Origin: Mobula hypostoma
Lineage: Eukaryota
Assembly (NCBI RefSeq): GCF_963921235.1
Contig: NC_086101.1
Location: forward strand, 13,454,001-13,518,000
Length of the DNA: 64,000 nucleotides
Direction: 5' to 3'
In this document: piece after piece, positions 16,026-57,839 of the stretch
How positions within the stretch are numbered: the stretch's first letter is position 1
Layout: each line of letters opens with the position of its first letter
Translations under genes and position numbers: made by a program
Notes under the pieces: model-generated
What the model saw: only the letters and a program-made list of their open reading frames with translations
The model's database searches: none
Told to the model about the DNA's origin: nothing

Positions 16026-16358
<333 letters not shown>

Positions 16359-22463: not shown

Positions 22464-22827
22464 ATGTCGACCGCTGATGCTGTTCCCGCAAATGGCACGG
22501 CTGTGGGTTCCAAGAGCATCTTGTCAAAGAAGGGCTCCGAGAAACAGAAGAAGAGCAGGAAGGAGAGCTACAGCACCTACATCTATAAAGTGCTGAAGCA
22601 GGTCCACCCGGACACGAGCCTTTCGTCCAAGGCCATGAGTATCCTCAACTCGTCCGTCGCCGATATCTTCGAGCGAGGCTTCCTTCCTGGTGCAATACAC
22701 CCGCCGCCAGACCATCTCCTCCCGGGACATCCAGAGTGCCGTCCGCTTCCTGCTGCCCGGGGGACTGGCCAAACACGCCGTCTCGGAAGGAACAAAAACG
22801 GTCACCAAATACACGAGCTCCAAGTAG
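22464..22827 (+). pseudogene. H2B: Divergent histone H2B variant with frameshifting deletion
   Basis: Frame 1 ...[39 protein letters not shown]; after about 22674 another frame gives [50 protein letters not shown]. 11 nt (RIAx) are missing. Confidence 0.9.
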
Positions 22828-22858
22828 ATTCTCCCCGAAAAAGATTAAACCACCAAAC

Positions 22859-22874
22859 GGCTCTTCCGCGAGCC
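22859..22874 (+). promoter_or_regulatory. Degenerate histone stem-loop
   Basis: GGCTCT-TCCG-CGAGCC; top pair mismatched and loop non-canonical. Confidence 0.75.
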
Positions 22875-23869
22875 ATCCAATCAAAGTTAAAATGAGATCA
22901 TAACTGATCAGCAAAATACTTGTAGGCGTCGAATTAGAAGCGCATTAGATATAATGAAAACGAAAAAACCAAGGCTGCAATTCTTAAAATAAATACTGGA
23001 AGCACTAATGTCTGACAGCGTTTTGAAAGAAAGTAAACCTTTCAGTTCGAAGACCCTCGTCTCAGTTTGGTATCAAAATAACCTATAGAAAGTAAATTTT
23101 GTCCTATTATTTCAAGTATTCAAATGTAAGGTGCAGCCATGCCTTGGCGTTCACTTGTGAACAATCTGTACTTAGAATCTATATTTAAATTCCACGAGTT
23201 TTGAATATAAAAGAAACCATCCAAATTAATTTTATTATTGGACATTCAAAAGAAAATAGTAAAATCTCATCATCTCCAAGTCTCAATTTATTTCGAATAA
23301 CCAATATCAAATTATGTTTGACCTCAATATCAATTCACATTTTTAACAGACGTCAATAATAATCACGGGATGTGTTTCGGACACATCAACAAAATTCATA
23401 CAAACTTCTGTGTTCCTAATTGCAATAAAATTTGTCCAACAATGTTGGGATACTATTTACACATAAAATTCCTACGGAATTCCATCCCCCAAACCAAGGC
23501 TGACCAAATATTAATGTACAATTTTAAGGAAATTTGTCCAAATCTATGTAACTAGTTTCTGAGAATATTCCTTTGTTTTGTCTATGAAAACGCTTATAAA
23601 CTAAATACAAGGCTAGGCACCCTGACCCTTCGATAATGAGAAAGAGTAATGGAACATCTTCTGTTTGAGATGCTTTGACTTCTCCTGTTGTGCTTCCTGT
23701 TGCCCTGGTCCTCCCAGTGTATGCCAAAAACCTAGTGCGGGTCTTTCTGGCAGCAAATATCAAATACTGTACATCATTTACACATCTTGCTGTAGGCATG
23801 ATATTATCTTGCCAACGTTACCTTGAACCTCTCTTAAAAACTTAGGTTAAAAAACCATCCTTTATTTTC

Positions 23870-25593: not shown

Positions 25594-26337
25594 CTAGTAG
25601 CGCCGGGATCCGAGTTGGCGTTGGCGCCCCACCGGCCGCCGGGTCCGCCCGCGATTCACTTTGCCTTTGGCAGATTTGTACCGGCGATAGACCTGTGCCG
25701 TCCCAGCCCTGCCTGCTTTAGGCTTGAGTCGGGCACGGGCCTTGGCTTTGGCGCGGGGCCGGGCGCCCGTTTTGGGCCGGCGCTTGAGGGGACGAGCGGT
25801 GGTCTTCCGTGGCTTAGTCTGGCGCCTTGGGCTCCTCTTCTTGTTCCGCGTCCTCTTGGAAGGGGCAGGAGTGCGCCAAGCCGCCTTCCTGCGGCTCGTC
25901 TCTTTCTTCTCCTGCTTGGGAGCCGCCACCCGGTTCAGCTTGAAGGAACCGGCGGCGCCGAGGCCGCTAGTCTTCACCAGCGAGCCCTTCTGCACCAGCT
26001 GGCGTACCGTCAGGTTGACGCGAGCGTTGTTGCGGTTCACATCGTAACCCTTGGCCGACAGCGCTTTCTTCAGGGCTGCCAGCGAGATGCCACGCCTCTC
26101 CTTGGTAGCTGCCGCCAAATTGAGGACGTGGTCGGTGATGGTGGGGCCATTCTGCGGCTTCTTGGGCCGCGGCGGCGCCTTTGGCTGAACCTGTTGCCGC
26201 GACGGTTGTTGCTGCTTCTTTTTCTTCACCGCCCCATCCTTGTCCGGTGCCATCCGACCTTGCGGCGGGGTGGAGCCGCCACCGCCTCCCTTTTCACCGG
26301 AATCGCTGCCGTCTACCGTCTTCTGGTTTTCCGCCAT
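25594..26337 (-). CDS. H1: Histone H1 variant with Arg-rich (protamine-like) C-terminal tail, 247 aa
   Basis: Globular domain GPTITDHVLNLAAATKERRGISLAALKKALSAKGYDVNRNNARVNLTVRQLVQKGSLVKTSGLGAAGSFKLN; start MAENQ set by the TATA box about 80 nt upstream; stem-loop present. Confidence 0.92.
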   Translation of the reverse strand: MAENQKTVDGSDSGEKGGGGGSTPPQGRMAPDKDGAVKKKKQQQPSRQQVQPKAPPRPKKPQNGPTITDHVLNLAAATKERRGISLAALKKALSAKGYDVNRNNARVNLTVRQLVQKGSLVKTSGLGAAGSFKLNRVAAPKQEKKETSRRKAAWRTPAPSKRTRNKKRSPRRQTKPRKTTARPLKRRPKTGARPRAKAKARARLKPKAGRAGTAQVYRRYKSAKGKVNRGRTRRPVGRQRQLGSRRY

Positions 26338-36865: not shown

Positions 36866-38310
36866 CCCAGTTAGACGAGGATTGAGTTCAAGAATTGTGA
36901 GGTAATGTTGCAACTCCATAAAACTCTGGTTAGACCACACTTGGAATATTGTGTTCAGTTCTAGTTGCTTTATTATAGGAAGGTTGTAGAAACTTTAGAG
37001 AGGGTTCAGAGGAGATTCCCCAGGATGGTCCCTGGATTAGGGAGCAAGTCTTATGAGGATAGGTTTTGCAAGTTAGAGCTTTTCTCTTTGCAGTGAAGGA
37101 GACTAAGAGGTGACTTGATAGAGTTGTACAAGATGATAAGAGGCATAGATTGAGTGGACAGCCAGGACTATTTTCCCCCAACATGGAAATAGCTAATACA
37201 AGGGGTGATTGGAGAAACATATAGGAAGGATGTCAGACATAGGTGTTTTTTTAATCACAGAGAGTGATGGATGCTTGGAATGTGCTGTCAGGGATGGTGG
37301 CAGAGGCACATACATTAGGGACATTGAATGGACTCTCAGATAGGTGCATAGATAAAAGACAAATGGAAGGCAATCTCGGAGGGAAGAGTTAGATTGATCA
37401 GGAATACGGTTTTAAGACAGATTGTTTCTGATGACACAAAAGTTGGGGAGGTGACACAAAAGTAGGAGGTGTTGTGGAAAGTCTGGAGGGTTGTCAGAGG
37501 TTATAGCACAACATTGATAGGATGCAGAACTGGGGTGAGAAGTGGCAGATGCAGATCAGCTCAGGTAAGTGTGAAGTGGTTCATTTCGTTAGGTCAAAAA
37601 CTTGAAGACAGAATATAATGTTAATGGTAAGTGTGGAAGATCAGCAAGATTTGGGGACACTCAAAGCTGCTGTGCATGTCGACAGTGTTGTTAAGAAGGC
37701 GTATGGTGTGTTGACCTTCATCAACTGTGGGATTGAGTTCAGGAGACAAGAGGTAATGTTACAGCTATAGAAGACCTTGGTCAGATCCAAGTAATGTGCT
37801 CAGTTCTGGTCACCTCACTACAGGAAGGATGTAAATGCTATAGAGAGAGTGCAGAGGAGATTTACAAGGATGTTGCCTGGATTGGGGAGTATGCCTTATG
37901 AGAACAGGTTGAGTGAACTTGGCCTTTTCTCCTTGGAGCGACTGAGGATGAGAGGTGACCTGATAGAGGTGTATAAGAGAAGGATTGATCATGTGGATAG
38001 TCAGAGGCTTTCTCCCAGGGCTGAAATGGCTGCCACAAGAGGACACAGGTTTAAGCTGCTGGGGAGTAGGTACAGAGATGTCAGGGGTAAGTTTTTTTTA
38101 CTCAGAGCGTGGTGAGTGCGTGGAATGGGCTGCCAGCAACGGTGGTGGAGGCGGATACAATAGGGTCTTTTAAGAGACTCTTAGATAGGTACAGGGAGCT
38201 TAGAAAAATAGAGGGCTATGCATTAGTAAAATTCTAGGCAGTCTCTAGAGAAGGTTACATGGTCTACACGACATTGTGGGCTGAAAGACCTGTAGATTTC
38301 TATGTTCTAT
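36866..38310 (+). mobile_element. Two tandem CR1 3' fragments
   Basis: QRRFTRMLPGLGSMPYENRLSELGLFSLE; CR1 tail tttctatgttctat at about 38300. Confidence 0.85.
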
Positions 38311-38889
38311 GGCAGATCAGGCCTTGAACTACTAAATGGCCACGCAGTTGCCCTGAAATGAGTCACAGATCTTTCAAAGAAAGTAAGGGCAGCTGCCAAG
38401 AGTAAAACAAAACTCTTTCTACGCGTATTTCTTCATCCATTTCAGCAGATGTCTTCCAAAGGGGGAGAGAATAGAGACGATTCGCCGTTTCCCAAAATCC
38501 GCGGGGTTAAAGCAGCAAGTTCAAAGTCAGGTTTGTTGCAGAGGTATGCGTACGCAGGAAATAAATTCAATGGAAAATAACTTGGTACACAGCATATTAT
38601 AAGCATTAACAGAAACTTAAATTGACATAATTTAACCAAAAAAAAACAATAGAGGAAATTGAAAAGGAAACAAAAAAGTAATACAGCCCGAGGTTAGGTT
38701 CCGGAAGTGTTGAACCCGGCCAAAGGAAAAGTACAGTACTGTATACAACTTGAAGAGCTGCGGGGTGGGCGACGTGCCGGGGCGAACCCAACTCCGTGAG
38801 CAGGAGCAGGTTGGTTCCACCTCGTCCGCTTCCCGCCTTTAAAAGGAGAGCAGCCGCCGCCGCGCCGCGTCTTGAGGCGAGTGCGTGGG

Positions 38890-39582
38890 ATGGCTGACAT
38901 GGTTCCTGCTAACGACGAGGGCGCGGCTCCCAACTGCCCCTTTCCTGCCACCAGTGGCCTGCTCTCGGCTGCCAAGAAGAAGGCAGGTTATAGGGCACAG
39001 AAGAAGAAAGGCACGGTGGCCGCCACCAAGGAGCGCCAGGCGACCAAGCTGGGCGCCGTGAAGACCACCTCGGCCGCCGGCTCCCGCCCTCGTCAGCCGC
39101 CCGACACCTTGCGTTGCAAAGGTTCCGCCGGCAGCTCTGCTTCCGCTCTCCGCTCGAATCAGGAGGGGGAAGGCGAGCAGAGAGAGGTCGAGAAGCAGAG
39201 CAAAAAGGTGGTTCGGAAGAGAGCTGCAGCCGCAAAGCCCACTGCCCGGAAAAGAGCCGCAGCAGCCGAGCCCAGTGCCCGGAAAAGAGCCGCAGCAGCC
39301 GAGCCCAGTGCCCGGAAAAGAGCCGCAGTAGCCGAGCCCGCTGCCCGGAAAAGAGCCGCAGCAACCAAGCCCGCTGCCCGGAAAAGAGCCGCAGCAACCA
39401 AGCCAGCTGCCCGGAAAAGAGCCGCAGCAACCAAGCCAGCTGCCCGGAAAAGAGCCGTAGCAACCAAGCCCACTGCCCGGAAGCCGGCGGCCAAAAGCCC
39501 TCGCAAGTGCACGACCGCCATGGCCAAAAAAGCGCCCAAGCGGCCCGCTGTTTACAGGGCAGCCAGGCCGTCAAACAGATAG
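38890..39582 (+). CDS. H1-derived basic protein with deleted globular domain and 8 x 11-aa repeat, 230 aa
   Basis: Residual H1 blocks VAATKERQ, SAAG, KGS; clear paralogy to 56825-57421; open frame; TTTAAAA about 50 nt upstream; perfect stem-loop 27 nt after the stop. Confidence 0.85.
   Translation: MADMVPANDEGAAPNCPFPATSGLLSAAKKKAGYRAQKKKGTVAATKERQATKLGAVKTTSAAGSRPRQPPDTLRCKGSAGSSASALRSNQEGEGEQREVEKQSKKVVRKRAAAAKPTARKRAAAAEPSARKRAAAAEPSARKRAAVAEPAARKRAAATKPAARKRAAATKPAARKRAAATKPAARKRAVATKPTARKPAAKSPRKCTTAMAKKAPKRPAVYRAARPSNR
39214..39477 (+). repeat. 33-bp coding tandem repeat x8 (RKRAAA[A/T][K/E]P[A/S/T]A)
   Basis: Unit cggaaaagagccgcagcaaccaagcccgctgcc. Confidence 0.95.
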
Positions 39583-39609
39583 ATGGAAGCCAACTATCCG
39601 AACACAAAA

Positions 39610-39625
39610 GGCTCTTTTCAGAGCC
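39610..39625 (+). promoter_or_regulatory. Histone 3' stem-loop
   Basis: AAAA-GGCTCTTTTCAGAGCC-AC; canonical. Confidence 0.95.
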
Positions 39626-40398
39626 ACGCACACATTTCTATCGAAGGGCTATAGATATTAAAGGCACATTACGGCACAATCAAGCTTTAACATCTTTTTC
39701 AATCCTTTCAATAATCCATATAAATTTGGAAAAGTTCAACAAATGCCGGATATGTATTTTACTGTATCACACGCATGCTGACAAGCAAATTCTTCATCCT
39801 TTTTATGCGTTTGCTGTCCAAACTAATAGTATAAAACAGGTCTATATCGAAAATAAAACTATGTTTACTTCTGCCTTCATATTTTTCTCATTTTTCTCTC
39901 TTGCTGCTCAATATTTAATTTGATTTTGCTATGGTTGTGGTTTTTGTGGATATGCTGGTTTTTTTTGCTCGTTTGTAATAAAAAATATTTTTTAAAAATA
40001 AGCTTGATGGGAAATTTTGCAGCAATTCATGACATTTGACAACTTTTACTGAAATTAAATTATTCAATATAAATCATGTTAACCTTTTAGACCTGACGTC
40101 AATGGTTCATATCAAATATATTGTATACTCAATACACAATTACTTTATCCCAGTCTCTGGAATATTTATAAGATTAAAGGATATTAAATAAAATGAATAA
40201 TAATTATGTTTTTGTAGAAAAACCTTGCTGGGTTAATCTAGACTTGCAAACAAGCGATCTAGAAAACGGAGCTGATTTGTCTTCTTACACAAAATGCTGT
40301 AGAATTTAGCAGACCAGATAGCATCTATGGAAAAAAGTACCTAACCCTAAAAGTATTTTTTTCCGTCGATATTGCCTGGCCTGCTGAGTTCCTCCAGC

Positions 40399-40603: not shown

Positions 40604-41008
<405 letters not shown>

Positions 41009-41039
41009 ATACAACAGGCAAAATTTAAAAAAAAACAAA

Positions 41040-41055
41040 GGCTCTTTTAAGAGCC
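41040..41055 (+). promoter_or_regulatory. Histone 3' stem-loop (H2A)
   Basis: GGCTCTTTTAAGAGCC. Confidence 0.95.
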
Positions 41056-41789
41056 AGCCAATCAATTTTTAAAGTGCTTGATCACAATTTCGTTTTGGTT
41101 CCATACCTCGAATAAGATAATTTTGGAGGTGTAACGTGGTAGTTACCAGAGGTTTCTAAACAGTTTAGGACTGGAGGAACATGTTAAGATGGTGAGTGAA
41201 TTGTTTACCCCAGAGGACTGTGATGGTGGATTGGGTCTTGGAGTTTTAGGAGACTAGGAAATGGGAGAACCGATAAGGGGACCGGCGACGAGACAGATCA
41301 CCCTTGATCATACTGGATATCCTAAACCACTACAAATGAAAGGCAGGACAGGCTTGAGGGGCAAGTGGTCTACACCTGCAAGGTAAAATATTTGCACCAC
41401 AATATCCAGATGACTTCAGCTTTAACACAGTTTCGGAAGAGAATTCTAGGCCATCTTGTCAGGAACTTCACTTAGAGAGTATTCAGTATAACTACTACCT
41501 TACCAGCTTGGGTAGTTTGTACCCTTCATAAATTCACCTTAATTCTTGGATCTCTTTTATCCAAGAACTACATCACCACTTCATGATAGATATCGTTAAC
41601 TTGTTCCATGGTTGATATGCATGTGCTTTGTTCCCCTGCCTCGCCTTTAATATGTGACATTTCCAACCTCTGAAACCTGAAATTACTTGTCAAGTTTATT
41701 GTCATTTAACTATATATAAATAACCTATATATCCATATATTGAAACTGAAGCATTTCTCCAAACTAGGGTGTAAAGCACAGTAATACAC

Positions 41790-45080: not shown

Positions 45081-45457
45081 ATGATGTGAAATTGTTAGGA
45101 GTAGTGGTACTAAAGCCAAGACTCGATCATGTCGCGCTGGATTGTAGTTCCCTGTAGGTCGTATCCATCGCCTTTTTCCCGGAGGGAATTATGCTGAATG
45201 AGTAGGGGCTGGAGCTCCGGTCTATCTGGCGCATTTCTCGAGTATCTAACGGCCCAGATCTTGGGACTGGCGGGTAACGCGGCCCGGGACGACAAGAAGA
45301 TGAGGATCATTTCCCGCTACCTACAGCTCGCCGTCTGCAACGATGAAGAGCCCAACTGTTGTGTGGTGTCACCATCGCCCAGCGTGGAGTACAGCCCAAC
45401 CTTCAGGCTGGGCTGCTGCACAAGAAAATGGGTCAACCCAGCAAAATATACATCTGG
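45081..45457 (+). pseudogene. Histone H2A pseudogene
   Basis: [20 protein letters not shown]...[15 protein letters not shown] / [39 protein letters not shown] / [30 protein letters not shown]; stops and frameshifts; CCAAT 44991 and TATA about 45027; no stem-loop found. Confidence 0.9.
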
Positions 45458-46620
45458 GCGATCAAGCAAACATTCAGACTGGTATATTACAAGCTCACCA
45501 GTCTTATTTCTAAAGGGCCTCAATTTAATTACACGGATTCATGAGAGGCGAAAGCTGGAAATGTGTCCGAATATTCTGCGCCTAGTTCATTTTGGATTTG
45601 TGCTTGACTATCTTTAATTTATTAAATTAATGCAATAAATTTGTTGCAATTAAAAACTTACTTCAATCACCTAAATGTGTGTGTCGGGTTGGGGGATGGT
45701 GAAGGAGAGCATTTAAAACCTGTCTCAGTTTTCACGGAAACTTCCCTTTGAGTTGATCTGTGCGGCAAACTTTTAAACATTCATTAGCGGATAATACAAT
45801 AAGGGAAACCTCAGGAAAGCGAGGAGGGTTGTTCCAAAAGGTTTCGAAAAAAATAACTCCATGACGAACCCTCTGCATGCAGAAGGCGCAGTTTCCTGCC
45901 CAAAGTTCATCAATCCACTCGACAAATATTGCAGTTAAACTTGCCCTCATGCTAATTATAAAATTAATTTCATTCACAAGTCTTAAAATAACATGAACTT
46001 GGAAGGGGCTTTTCACCTTGTAAGTTATTTAATTAGCGGGATGTATCTTCTAAATAAACTCAAAACGGCAAGGACTATCCCATATTGAATACTGGTTAAC
46101 AGCTACCTTAGAAGTTCACAGCAAAAAAGAGTTTTTTGGTGGCAAATGCTTTAATTGGGGAGAAACACATTTTGATAGCATTTTTAAAAACTGCCACCGT
46201 TTAAATATCGTATTTCTGTGGTACAAATACAAATATTCTGGTTACCAAGTAGCAATTGTGTACTAAGAAACGTAGTTTGCATACAGTTCCTCTACATGAA
46301 TTCAAAAGTGACCAATCAATGGGTTTCATTTTAACCAATGATATTATTTCACGAACCACCAATCAGAATTTGTAATTGCGTCCCACGGAATTTGCCCAGT
46401 ACCCAGAAAGCAGAAGCTGACGTAAAGGCGGGTGAACCAATGAGAACGTAGTCTTTCACCCAATGACGGCGACGTTGTTAGATTTTGCATTTTGACAAAG
46501 ATGTTTGGCAAAAGATACGTATTCACTCACATATCTAATAAAAAAAAGATATTTAAATGCAATCGTTTCAACCGTCCCGGTTTATATGGCGCTGGTGAAG
46601 CACAGCGACAACTTGCTGGT

Positions 46621-51909: not shown

Positions 51910-52224
<315 letters not shown>

Positions 52225-56250: not shown

Positions 56251-56786
56251 TAGTCCTCGAATAATTAATTCTGAAAGTGATAGATATACATCAAATAATC
56301 AGGAACTGACAGATACGGCTGAAAGCTGGATTCCTGATCTTAATGATTCTTGAGTACGATTCATAGGACATGAATGCCACAAAAAGCAGAATCCATCACC
56401 ACCATGCAGCCCATGCCCTCTACTCGCTCCGACCATTGGGCAGCAGGTACACGGAGCTTAGGTCCCACACCAACAGCTTCAAGAAGCTGGACCAGGAAGG
56501 ATATCTTTACTCACTTCCACTCTGAACTGATTTCACAACCTATGGACTCACTAACTCATGTTCTCAGTATTATTTGTTTTTCTTTTGTATTTTGTTTGTC
56601 ACTGCAGTTTTCACTTACTGTATTTCTTGGTTGTACTGATAATGGTTGTAAGAAAATGTATCTCGGGTCAGTATGTGGTGTCGTATGCATATTTGCTAAT
56701 AAATTTACTTTATATGTGATTAACTGTGGACTTAGTACTGTTCCTGGATGTTACTGCGCAGCCCTCCCCTCTGAAGATGTGTGCGC

Positions 56787-56802
56787 GGCTCTGAAAAGAG
56801 CC
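56787..56802 (-). promoter_or_regulatory. Histone 3' stem-loop
   Basis: Minus strand AAA-GGCTCTTTTCAGAGCC. Confidence 0.93.
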
Positions 56803-56824
56803 TTTGTTTTCAGATGCTTGACCT

Positions 56825-57421
56825 CTATTTCCGTTTGACAGCCCGGTGGCCACGCCCGGCAGTCCGGGAAGCAGCGGGACGCTTGGGCGCTTTTTTGGCC
56901 TTGGTCGTCGTGCGCTTGGTGGGACTCTTGGCACGATTCCGGGCAGCGGGCTTGGCTGCCGCCGATCTCTTCGGAGCCGTTTTTCTGGTCGCTGCTTTCT
57001 TCTTCGTCCCTCCTTTCCTCCGGTCCTCGGACTCTCCCTGCTCGCCCTGCGCTTCCCGATCCGGGTGGGGAGCGGAAGCGGAGCTGCCGGCGACAGTGCC
57101 TTCCACAGTGGAACCCTTGTTAGGCAAGGTGTCGGCCGGCAGGTTGGAGCGGGCGACGGCCTTGTCCGCCTCGTAGCCAGCGGCCGAGATGGGTTTCTTC
57201 ACACCGCCCAGCTTAGGAGCCTGTCGCTCTTTGGTGGCGGCCACCACCTCCGCGATCTGCTCAACCACCATGGCCGCCGTCGCCTTTTGTGACCGATGGA
57301 CCGCCTTCTTCTTAGCCGCAGTACCGACCGCGGCCGAAGGGGCGGCGAAGTCGGAACCGGCAGGAAGATCGGGAGGAAGAGCGGCGGGAGTATCAGCCTT
57401 GGCGGGAACGACCTCAGCCAT
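56825..57421 (-). CDS. H1-derived protein with degenerate globular domain, 198 aa
   Basis: MAE start; VVEQIAEVVAATKERQAPKLGGVKKPISAAGYEADKAVARSNLPADTLPNKGSTVEGTVAGSSASA is colinear with the H1 winged helix; K/A/P/R tail; stem-loop; CCAAT and GC boxes at 57529-57588. Confidence 0.88.
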   Translation of the reverse strand: MAEVVPAKADTPAALPPDLPAGSDFAAPSAAVGTAAKKKAVHRSQKATAAMVVEQIAEVVAATKERQAPKLGGVKKPISAAGYEADKAVARSNLPADTLPNKGSTVEGTVAGSSASAPHPDREAQGEQGESEDRRKGGTKKKAATRKTAPKRSAAAKPAARNRAKSPTKRTTTKAKKAPKRPAASRTAGRGHRAVKRK

Positions 57422-57839
57422 GAGAACCTTCCTGATCCGCGACGCCCCGCCTGGGTGGGGCGAGCAGCGGGACCCTCGCACATAATAGGGAAAGGTGGAC
57501 GTCGTAGAGCAAACCTGCTCGGAGCCTATCCAATCCCCTGCTACGGCGCTCCACTAGGTCCCGCCCTTCCCTGTAACTCTGACCAATCCACTGCTCGTAC
57601 CTGTGAGCCAGTGCCGGAGGGAGGTCGCCGATCCTGCTGGTCATTGTTAACGTGGAATGCCGCAGGTCTGGCGGGCGGAGAGGAAACCCGGTTGTAGAAG
57701 CCTCAACCCTGCTTACAGCTACCCAGCAAACACGCGTCGTCGCTCGGCAGGAGATTGACTGCAGATTGCTGCAACATTCATGGATTCGTGGTCTTGGACT
57801 ATTTTTGTGTTCTCTGTATTTTACTGATGAACTCCGGTT

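Follow-up and report, generated by a model that had tools for sequence, protein, structure and literature searches.

A domain-deleted, repeat-expanded gene of histone H1 descent in a histone cluster of Mobula hypostoma

The focal gene and its histone-type signals

We analysed a gene at about 39 kb in a stretch of 64,000 nucleotides (nt) of the Mobula hypostoma genome (NCBI RefSeq assembly GCF_963921235.1, contig NC_086101.1, positions 13,454,001 to 13,518,000 of the forward strand), which we call the window and by whose numbering all positions are given. This gene, hereafter the focal gene, encodes a protein that descends from linker histone H1, has no recognisable globular domain and carries eight tandem copies of a basic 11-residue unit, as had been proposed from a reading of the sequence alone (the original prediction). 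The analyses showed that it is a duplicate within a family of H1-derived, intronless, stem-loop-ended genes with an eroded winged helix, a family specific to sharks and rays. A literature search found no paper describing an H1-derived elasmobranch family, and the family is apparently undescribed. For comparison we used chiefly a paralogue of the parent type at about 57 kb in the same window and its counterpart in Pristis pectinata.

The open reading frame (ORF) gives a protein identical to P0001, deposited in NCBI/UniRef for M. hypostoma. The focal protein is therefore already an annotated product of this genome, and what is new is the nature of the protein, not its existence. It consists of 27.8% Ala, 13.9% Lys (32 residues), 12.6% Arg (29) and 8.7% Pro, with 10 Glu and 3 Asp, so that 61 Lys and Arg residues (26.5%) stand against 13 acidic ones. 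The Arg count is unusually high for an H1 and compares with 16 in the 57-kb paralogue.

The focal gene has the structure of a replication-dependent histone gene, being intronless and having a 3' stem-loop followed by a purine element (Table 1). Identical stem-loops are found in the parent and in Pristis. That of the focal gene scores 32.7 bits (E 9e-7) against the Rfam family Histone3, 1.3 bits short of the gathering score (34); at the gathering threshold Rfam lists just the stem-loop at 25.6 kb in the window, and that of the focal gene surfaces under an E-value threshold. Upstream, the paralogue and Pristis promoters carry two inverted CCAAT boxes (GGATTGG) just before the shared promoter block. 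Alignment showed that both are gone in the focal gene, one of them through a 10-nt deletion. A TATA-like box is found in the paralogue and in the Pristis orthologue, and the focal gene has its own. Two further ORFs overlap the locus, one of 240 codons at 38909-39631 (-) and one of 269 codons at 39114-39923 (+) in another frame; these are by-products of base composition and of the repeat, and ORF length means little at this locus.

Table 1. Features of the focal gene and of its reference paralogue, in window coordinates
Feature	Position	Strand	Basis
Promoter block (GAGCAGGTT...ACGTCC), common to the paralogue and the Pristis orthologue	38804..38829	+	three-way upstream and pairwise alignments
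TATA-like box TTTAAAAGG	38838..38846	+	sequence reading
Longest transcript contig (run X1, sister species, organism A; 1007 nt, depth 12.8)	38868..39930	+	read mapping
Coding sequence, 230 residues and stop	38890..39582	+	ATG at 38890, stop at 39580-39582
Remnant of the H1 winged helix, residues 43-80, VAATKERQATKLGAVK to KGSA	39016..39129	+	protein alignments
Acidic patch (NQEGEGEQREVE) inherited from the parent family, between winged-helix remnant and basic repeats	39157..39192	+	alignments
Eight tandem 33-nt (11-residue) units, RKRAAAxxPxA	39214..39477	+	Tandem Repeats Finder, unit table, pattern search
C-terminal tail, homologue of the parent tail (KSPRK...KKAPKRP)	39478..39579	+	three-way and family alignments
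Histone 3' stem-loop region, stem-loop proper 39610-39625	39605..39650	+	Rfam Histone3
Purine box GAAGGGCT after the stem-loop, also in the Pristis orthologue of the parent	39643-39650	+	alignment
AATAAA in the read-through 3' region, putative poly(A) signal	39852..39857	+	sequence
Second AATAAA, putative poly(A) signal	39977-39982	+	sequence
Parent-type paralogue with stem-loop, against which all deletions and the single-copy motif were read	56763..57421	-	alignments

Descent within an elasmobranch family

With the first 150 residues of the paralogue as query, orthologues came up in Pristis pectinata at 63% identity and in Heptranchias perlo at 51%, all lacking a Pfam domain; P0006, an H1 bearing PF00538, was matched as well. 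Searched with a profile of the family N-terminal region, the focal protein matched at 6.8e-31 and canonical H1s scored lower (for example P0013 at 3e-14). The exhaustive profile search placed members of the family in Pristis, Heptranchias, Heterodontus, Pristiophorus, Leucoraja, Rhinoraja, Scyliorhinus and Mobula, including a third M. hypostoma copy (P0012), which was compared as protein. Under the names given by NCBI, family members (P0003-P0005 and P0007-P0012) are 'histone H1-like', 'H1.4-like' or 'H1.10-like'.

With the conserved family motifs AAKKKAxYRxQK, ILEAVAATKERQAxKLGAVKK, GYExxK and KGSxVE as reference, the focal gene retains KKKAGYRAQK, VAATKERQATKLGAVK and KGS, and ILEA, GYExxK and VEG are deleted. 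Shared with the parent family are the MAD/E-xVPA start, AAKKKAxYRxQK, VAATKERQAxKLGAVK, KGS, the acidic patch, the KSPRK...KKAPKRP tail, the intronless gene, the stem-loop with its purine box and the promoter block. In contrast to the parent family, the focal gene is short of 23 domain-remnant residues, has eight copies of a motif that the others have once, and has lost both CCAAT boxes together with the SRTxGRxRRxxKRR end, which is present in P0003-P0005, P0008, P0009, P0011 and P0012. Its branch is the longest by far, the third Mobula copy excepted. Homology to H1 and a basic tail rich in Lys, Ala and Pro are both found, and the focal gene is a family member by descent and a deviant by architecture; it is not an H1 as defined by the domain.

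A tree built from the N-terminal region groups the focal gene, the 57-kb copy and the Pristis gene together at 83/96, with the order inside the group unresolved. End branches were 0.83 for the focal gene, 0.36 for the paralogue and 0.075 for Pristis, and the synonymous distances (dS) were 0.70 between focal gene and paralogue, 0.78 between focal gene and Pristis, and 0.46 between paralogue and Pristis. This pattern suggests that the duplication happened some time ago or else that the focal gene changed faster, two cases that three sequences cannot separate. The Pristis gene is convergent to an H4 gene whose two substitutions are shared by the H4 at 51913 of the window, and because both adjoin this H4, the 57-kb copy is the syntenic orthologue of the Pristis gene. 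The H4 beside the 57-kb gene (51913-52224, +) reads EEVRGVLK and RDSVTY, both departing from the canonical H4 sequence, and the Pristis H4 (L001:14196-14513, -) shows the same two departures. It seems that batoids have conserved a variant H4 in synteny with the eroded-H1 family.

When the whole focal protein was used as query, with 8000 candidates scored and low-complexity matches swamping the search, just the protein itself and P0002 were found; residues 1-110 matched the protein itself only, so that the collection searched records no orthologue closer than those above. The clusters of P0001 and P0003 have one member each, and therefore proteins of the sister species seem to lie outside that collection; the search does not show that closer orthologues are absent. 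P0002 is an unrelated ENA metagenome protein of 215 residues with about eight N-terminal ARKRRRAAKPV units at an 11-residue period, followed by a non-repetitive domain; it seems to have arrived at this type of basic unit convergently.

Loss of winged-helix segments

The ORF of the paralogue (56825-57421, -) encodes 198 residues counted from the conserved MAE start, and its NCBI model is named 'histone H1.4-like'. Aligned with the minus strand of 56690-57720, the focal gene shows 71% DNA identity, with internal gaps of 24, 27, 3, 21 and 18 nt, each a multiple of three. We mapped the deletions on the true H1 at 25.6 kb (PF00538, 6.5e-15) and on a shark H1 carrying PF00538. At the protein level, three in-frame deletions account for 23 winged-helix residues that the paralogue still has and the focal protein lacks: 9 at the start of helix 1, 8 in the GYExxK turn that links helices 2 and 3, and 6 in the first wing strand. 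Because the outgroups (Pristis, Heptranchias and others) retain these segments, they were lost in the focal gene, and the deletions took one third of an already eroded fold. Deletions in helix 1, the GY loop and the wing with the frame left open were thus borne out by both the DNA and the protein alignments.

The claim that the deletions keep the frame holds for the five internal ones and has to be qualified at the 3' end. The three-way alignment revealed a 13-nt deletion after 39560, relative to both paralogue and Pristis, that shifts the frame until a 2-nt deletion after 39578 compensates it. The six codons at 39561-39578 are read in the shifted frame, which gives the C-terminus ...YRAARPSNR, the ancestral stop position is re-used, and the SRTxGRxRRxxKRR end was removed or scrambled by these two deletions.

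The focal protein gave no match to PF00538 or any other Pfam family even at E <= 1. The AlphaFold2 model from a 10-sequence family alignment had a predicted local distance difference test score (pLDDT) of 51 and no secondary structure, the ESM Atlas model had a pLDDT of 0.34, and a search for look-alikes in the ESM Atlas yielded no usable feature match, all structure rows being at a template modelling (TM) score of 0.30 or less. These results agree with the description of an H1 derivative without a globular domain. The 57-kb paralogue itself has no recognisable winged helix: there was no Pfam match, and AlphaFold2 gave a pLDDT of 51 and one helix for its N-terminal part, from an alignment of 4 sequences that is too shallow to prove non-folding.

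The 33-nt repeat array

Tandem Repeats Finder reported a period of 33 nt with 8.2 copies at 39214-39482, 93% matches, 0 indels and a score of 391. The unit begins at codon phase 0. Searching for the 33-nt consensus at up to 3 mismatches gave 5 matches, all of them within the array, and 0 in 100 shuffles. The single KRSAAAKPAA motif of the paralogue aligns to the repeat unit, and its eightfold amplification in the focal gene, as originally proposed, was confirmed by this alignment.

The unit table likewise reproduced the two types that had been described, AEP in units 2-4 and TKP in units 5-8. Unit 1 (RKRAAAAKPTA) has a parent-like AKP; units 2 and 3 (RKRAAAAEPSA) are identical in DNA and unit 4 reads RKRAAVAEPAA; the TKP type comprises three units of RKRAAATKPAA, units 6 and 7 being identical in DNA, and one of RKRAVATKPTA. 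Lys and Arg make up 4 of the 11 residues of a TKP unit and 3 of the 11 of an AEP unit. What had been called an E-to-K gradient is correct as to the unit types and consists of two locally amplified subtypes; the sister species has one E-type unit, not three. We considered such a gradient as a functional design and rejected it, since it tracks the block-duplication history of the array.

Transcription

Eight small sequencing runs (from two organisms and two studies) contain 12-42% of the sequence words of the focal gene. Four of these were mapped on 38300-40300, where organism B is identical to the window and organism A differs by about 2.6%. The contig of run X1 starts at 38868, 30 nt downstream of the T that opens the TATA-like box, and runs through the coding sequence to about 300 nt past the stem-loop, while that of run X3 extends to 39750; overall the contigs pass the stem-loop by 120-300 nt. 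In the four runs mapped no contig covers 38300-38867 (568 nt upstream) or 39950-40300 (350 nt downstream), all contigs lying within 38868-39948. Apart from the array difference described below, the transcript contig is colinear with the DNA.

Runs X3 and X6 contain 0.36 and 0.27 of the focal words and 0.00 of the paralogue words, whereas multi-gigabase DNA runs of both organisms contain 0.64-1.00 of the paralogue words. The small runs are thus not like low-coverage genomic DNA, since focal words are present in them and paralogue words are at 0.00. The focal gene is real, transcribed and intronless, although the contigs carry no strand; a transcript, whose absence would have counted heavily against the original prediction, is found in runs from two species, covering the gene and not its flanks.

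Poly(A)-selected RNA-seq has been produced for the genomes of M. hypostoma, with nine organs of an adult female sampled, and M. yarae, with six organs including ovary and with DNA and RNA of one animal (10.64898/2026.10.27.761883). Organisms B and A probably correspond to M. hypostoma and M. yarae of that preprint, the run identities being coded. If this match holds, the transcripts would be polyadenylated read-through forms present in at least 4 female organs per species, testis would be unsampled, and any stem-loop-ended mRNA would be lost in poly(A) library preparation. The mRNA that passes the stem-loop would accordingly be seen in libraries that cannot show the stem-loop-ended form.

For the parent gene, X3, X6 and two further small runs of organism B (X29 and X30) contain 0.00 of the paralogue words (56740-57480). 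Either the parent gene is silent in these female organs or it makes only stem-loop-ended mRNA that is lost by poly(A) selection.

The gene in the sister species

Repeat number across species and frameshifts in relatives had been put forward as checks, and in organism A the ORF is intact and the array is 48 nt shorter. Contigs from two runs of organism A join 39260 to 39309, in frame and with no shared letters at the joint, which must therefore be present in the RNA reads of this organism. The joint yields a short RKRAAA unit that replaces most of units 2 and 3 and leaves one Glu-type unit, against three in M. hypostoma. An intron behind the 48-nt skip was considered and rejected, as its ends would be AG..AG and its position lies inside the array. 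Units 6 and 7 of organism A carry the same T>C at the same offset, which suggests conversion or unit turnover. Array length and composition appear to change quickly, by unit gain, loss and conversion.

The region 39583-39679, which includes the stem-loop, shows 0 differences between the two species. The three cysteines that had been singled out are present at residues 16, 76 and 207, but Cys76 is Asn in organism A, which is the parent state. We rejected the cysteines as a meaningful feature, because one of them has changed within 2.6% divergence and family members have Cys only sporadically.

Selection, function and alternative explanations

The probability that five of five internal deletions are multiples of three by chance is (1/3)^5 = 0.004. 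Indels between focal gene and paralogue in the flanks (10, 1 and 14 nt) are not multiples of three, the 13-nt and 2-nt deletions together remove 15 nt, and the difference from the sister species keeps the frame. Because the internal deletions are multiples of three and the 13-nt and 2-nt deletions compensate each other, we read the frame as having been defended for much of the history of the gene, with residues hardly constrained by whatever selection may still act. The codon alignment with the paralogue, one of the checks first suggested, thus points to past selection on the frame. The parent family is clearly under purifying selection, with 30 nonsynonymous and 29 synonymous changes between paralogue and Pristis (omega, the ratio of nonsynonymous to synonymous rates, 0.31; p = 2e-4). 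Relative to the parent, the substitution ratio of the focal gene is shifted (Fisher p = 0.035, both focal data sets pooled). The three-way counts were made on 105 N-terminal codons; all 156 shared columns, in which the repetitive tails are misaligned, gave inflated dS.

The most likely reading, which we hold with about as much belief as doubt, is a functional, fast-evolving and disordered H1-like polycation that is in effect all tail. Here a duplicate of a parent-type gene has lost fold segments by the three in-frame deletions, unequal exchange has amplified one tail motif to eight 11-residue units, and the two CCAAT boxes of the parent promoter have disappeared. The gene is expressed at a low level as a read-through mRNA, presumably polyadenylated, in several organs, apparently of females, of two Mobula species. 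Its product is predicted to be intrinsically disordered, comprising an H1 N-terminal remnant with the acidic patch, the eight RKR...K...P units and an H1-type tail, where each unit would offer an RKR cluster and a Lys, an Ala-rich spacer and a closing Pro. H1 C-terminal domains are an established model for non-specific electrostatic binding of nucleic acids, and by analogy the product may act much as the C-terminal domain of H1 does on its own; with no folded part, it would not dock on the nucleosome dyad as H1 does. Selection would keep the frame and barely constrain single residues. We consider it rather unlikely that the gene goes further than this and represents a functional H1 descendant that has shed the docking fold, a repeat-built polycation whose unit number and charge were retuned between Mobula species, and a living intermediate on the way from H1 to the protamine-like type, with expression not confined to the male germ line.

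Several observations weigh against function, and a number of them speak for a serious rival, that of a transcribed gene in decay, which we regard as a distinct though lesser possibility. In that case the gene would once have been selected and now be unconstrained, the array would be an ordinary GC-rich minisatellite whose period is a multiple of three by chance, the open frame would persist by base composition, and the poly(A)+ RNA would be functionless leaky read-through. Against the sister species we counted 13 nonsynonymous and 4 synonymous changes, with omega at 1.16 (1.50 outside the array) and not different from 1, and on the focal branch 43 and 21, with omega at about 0.70 (p = 0.12). 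The substitutions thus show no purifying selection on the protein now, contrary to what the original prediction had suggested, and the open frame that it had taken as a sign of selection is weak alone: the other frames of the stretch hold only 1-4 stops, and 23% of neutral simulations left the N-terminal part open. The coding sequence differs from the sister species by 2.6%, no less than the 3' flank (1.7%), and neither the C-terminal motif that the family conserves nor the two CCAAT boxes remain. Evolution of the parent seems to be slower: DNA runs of the sister species contain 0.64-0.70 of the paralogue words, for which we estimate a divergence of about 1.2%. The end branch of the focal gene is the longest of those given above (0.83, against 0.36 for the paralogue and 0.075 for Pristis). 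Contig depth is low (3-13 by k-mer), and expression is roughly estimated at about 1 fragment per kilobase per million (FPKM) if the run sizes of the preprint are assumed. Eroded histone genes also occur elsewhere in the cluster (22464 and 45198). However, with dS at about 0.7-0.8 to both paralogue and Pristis, a dead gene should have gained out-of-frame indels, and yet all indels of the coding sequence are in frame or compensated, unlike those of the flanks. The TATA box, the start codon context, the stem-loop and the purine box are intact, 39583-39679 is the same in the sister species, and the 48-nt species difference is in frame. Moreover, two species give too few substitutions to separate an omega of 1 from, for example, 0.5.

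Function is also weakened by the fact that the product is known as a predicted sequence only and that the contigs do not give the strand of the transcript. The former would equally suit a transcript that acts as RNA, or a minisatellite in a dead histone gene, with no protein made, as would the long ORFs in 3 of the 6 frames, the antisense one of 240 codons at 38909-39631 among them; such a case is very improbable, given that the indels are in frame or compensated and that the start codon, the position of the stop codon and the signals of a histone mRNA are all conserved. As to the periodic DNA-binding polymer of the original prediction, the protein is indeed built largely from a periodic basic unit, whereas non-specific electrostatic binding of DNA or RNA, charge neutralisation and condensation are read from composition only.

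A protamine-like sperm nuclear basic protein, by which we mean an H1 descendant with a repeat-built tail that compacts sperm DNA, acts mainly in spermatids and evolves fast, would account for the shown descent from H1, the lost fold and the enrichment in Arg over the paralogue. An omega near or above 1 and a difference in array length fit general knowledge of such proteins, which are described as dynamic in copy number and sequence (PMC13148410). We nevertheless find this improbable. The transcript is present in at least 4 samples per species, apparently from female organs (heart, liver, spleen, kidney, ovary and others), with no testis sequenced, and since the RNA seemingly comes from female-organ poly(A)+ libraries the focal gene is not testis-restricted. 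A Lys and Arg content of 26.5% is H1-like, Cys76 is unconserved, and 3 of the 8 units carry Glu.

Comparison with known linker histones and sperm proteins

With canonical H1/H5 proteins (PF00538), such as the arginine-rich H1 at 25594-26334, the focal gene shares descent, a basic tail rich in Ala, Lys and Pro, a histone-type gene and the location in the cluster. It differs from them in having no foldable winged helix, so that docking on the dyad is not expected, in an Arg frequency close to that of Lys, in a tail that is a strict tandem array, and in transcripts that are read-through and presumably polyadenylated.

A transition from H1 to protamines has been proposed for the protamine-like (PL) sperm nuclear basic proteins. 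The focal gene is likewise an H1 descendant that is simpler, richer in Arg, without the fold and fast-evolving, but its transcripts apparently come from female organs, its basic content is lower, some of its units bear Glu, and it has an acidic patch. PL proteins have very high Lys and Arg contents, above the 26.5% of the focal protein. Nor does the focal protein resemble protamines proper, which are small and dominated by Arg: it has 230 residues with 12.6% Arg. HILS1, a divergent mammalian spermatid linker histone (PMC6069787), is comparable as an H1 relative that departs from the canonical ones; in the focal gene, by contrast, the fold is wholly lost, the protein is repeat-built and the origin is independent and elasmobranch-specific.

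Replication-dependent histone genes can give polyadenylated transcripts in differentiated tissues. The focal gene resembles these in its intact stem-loop, in RNA that extends past the stem-loop and in its presence in what appear to be poly(A)-selected libraries of adult organs, and it differs in being derived and non-canonical and in having a poly(A) site that is deduced only.

Linker histones are defined by their folded, nucleosome-docking domain, and what is known of the erosion that they tolerate and of the routes by which H1 gives rise to protamine-like proteins comes mostly from invertebrates. Here one 64-kb cluster contains three stages, namely a true folded H1, an eroded and conserved descendant, and a domain-deleted, repeat-expanded copy, and shark and ray outgroups allow each step to be polarised. 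If the protein is made, the focal gene is a natural experiment on an H1 tail without its anchor and on the tuning of a polycation by repeat number. If it is not made, the gene shows that a histone-type gene can for long keep its frame, signals and transcription while drifting, which is a caution for annotation, as the protein is on record.

The surrounding cluster

The window is a vertebrate histone cluster full of fragments of long interspersed nuclear elements (LINEs), in which intact, variant and eroded histone genes are mixed. An intact H2A with unusual residues and the C-terminus GHPSKVYT lies 1 kb downstream of the focal gene (40619-41008, +), and its stem-loop at 41035-41080 scores 33.2 bits, just under the gathering score. 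A second H4 (16026-16343, -) has more substitutions than the one at 51913, with the frame open. The ORF at 22464-22895 (+) is H2B-like up to ...DIFER and continues into unrelated sequence rich in Pro, Gly and Arg; by eye, either a frameshift has made it an H2B pseudogene or the assembly is wrong here. A degenerate H2A fragment without the N-terminal third, at 45198-45617 (+), is probably a pseudogene. In Pristis pectinata, about 9 kb upstream of the family member, L001:454-1008 (+) encodes an H1 in which helices 1-3 can be recognised and which also has poly-Gln runs and a tail rich in Arg; the arginine-rich H1 at 25.6 kb of the window may be its counterpart.

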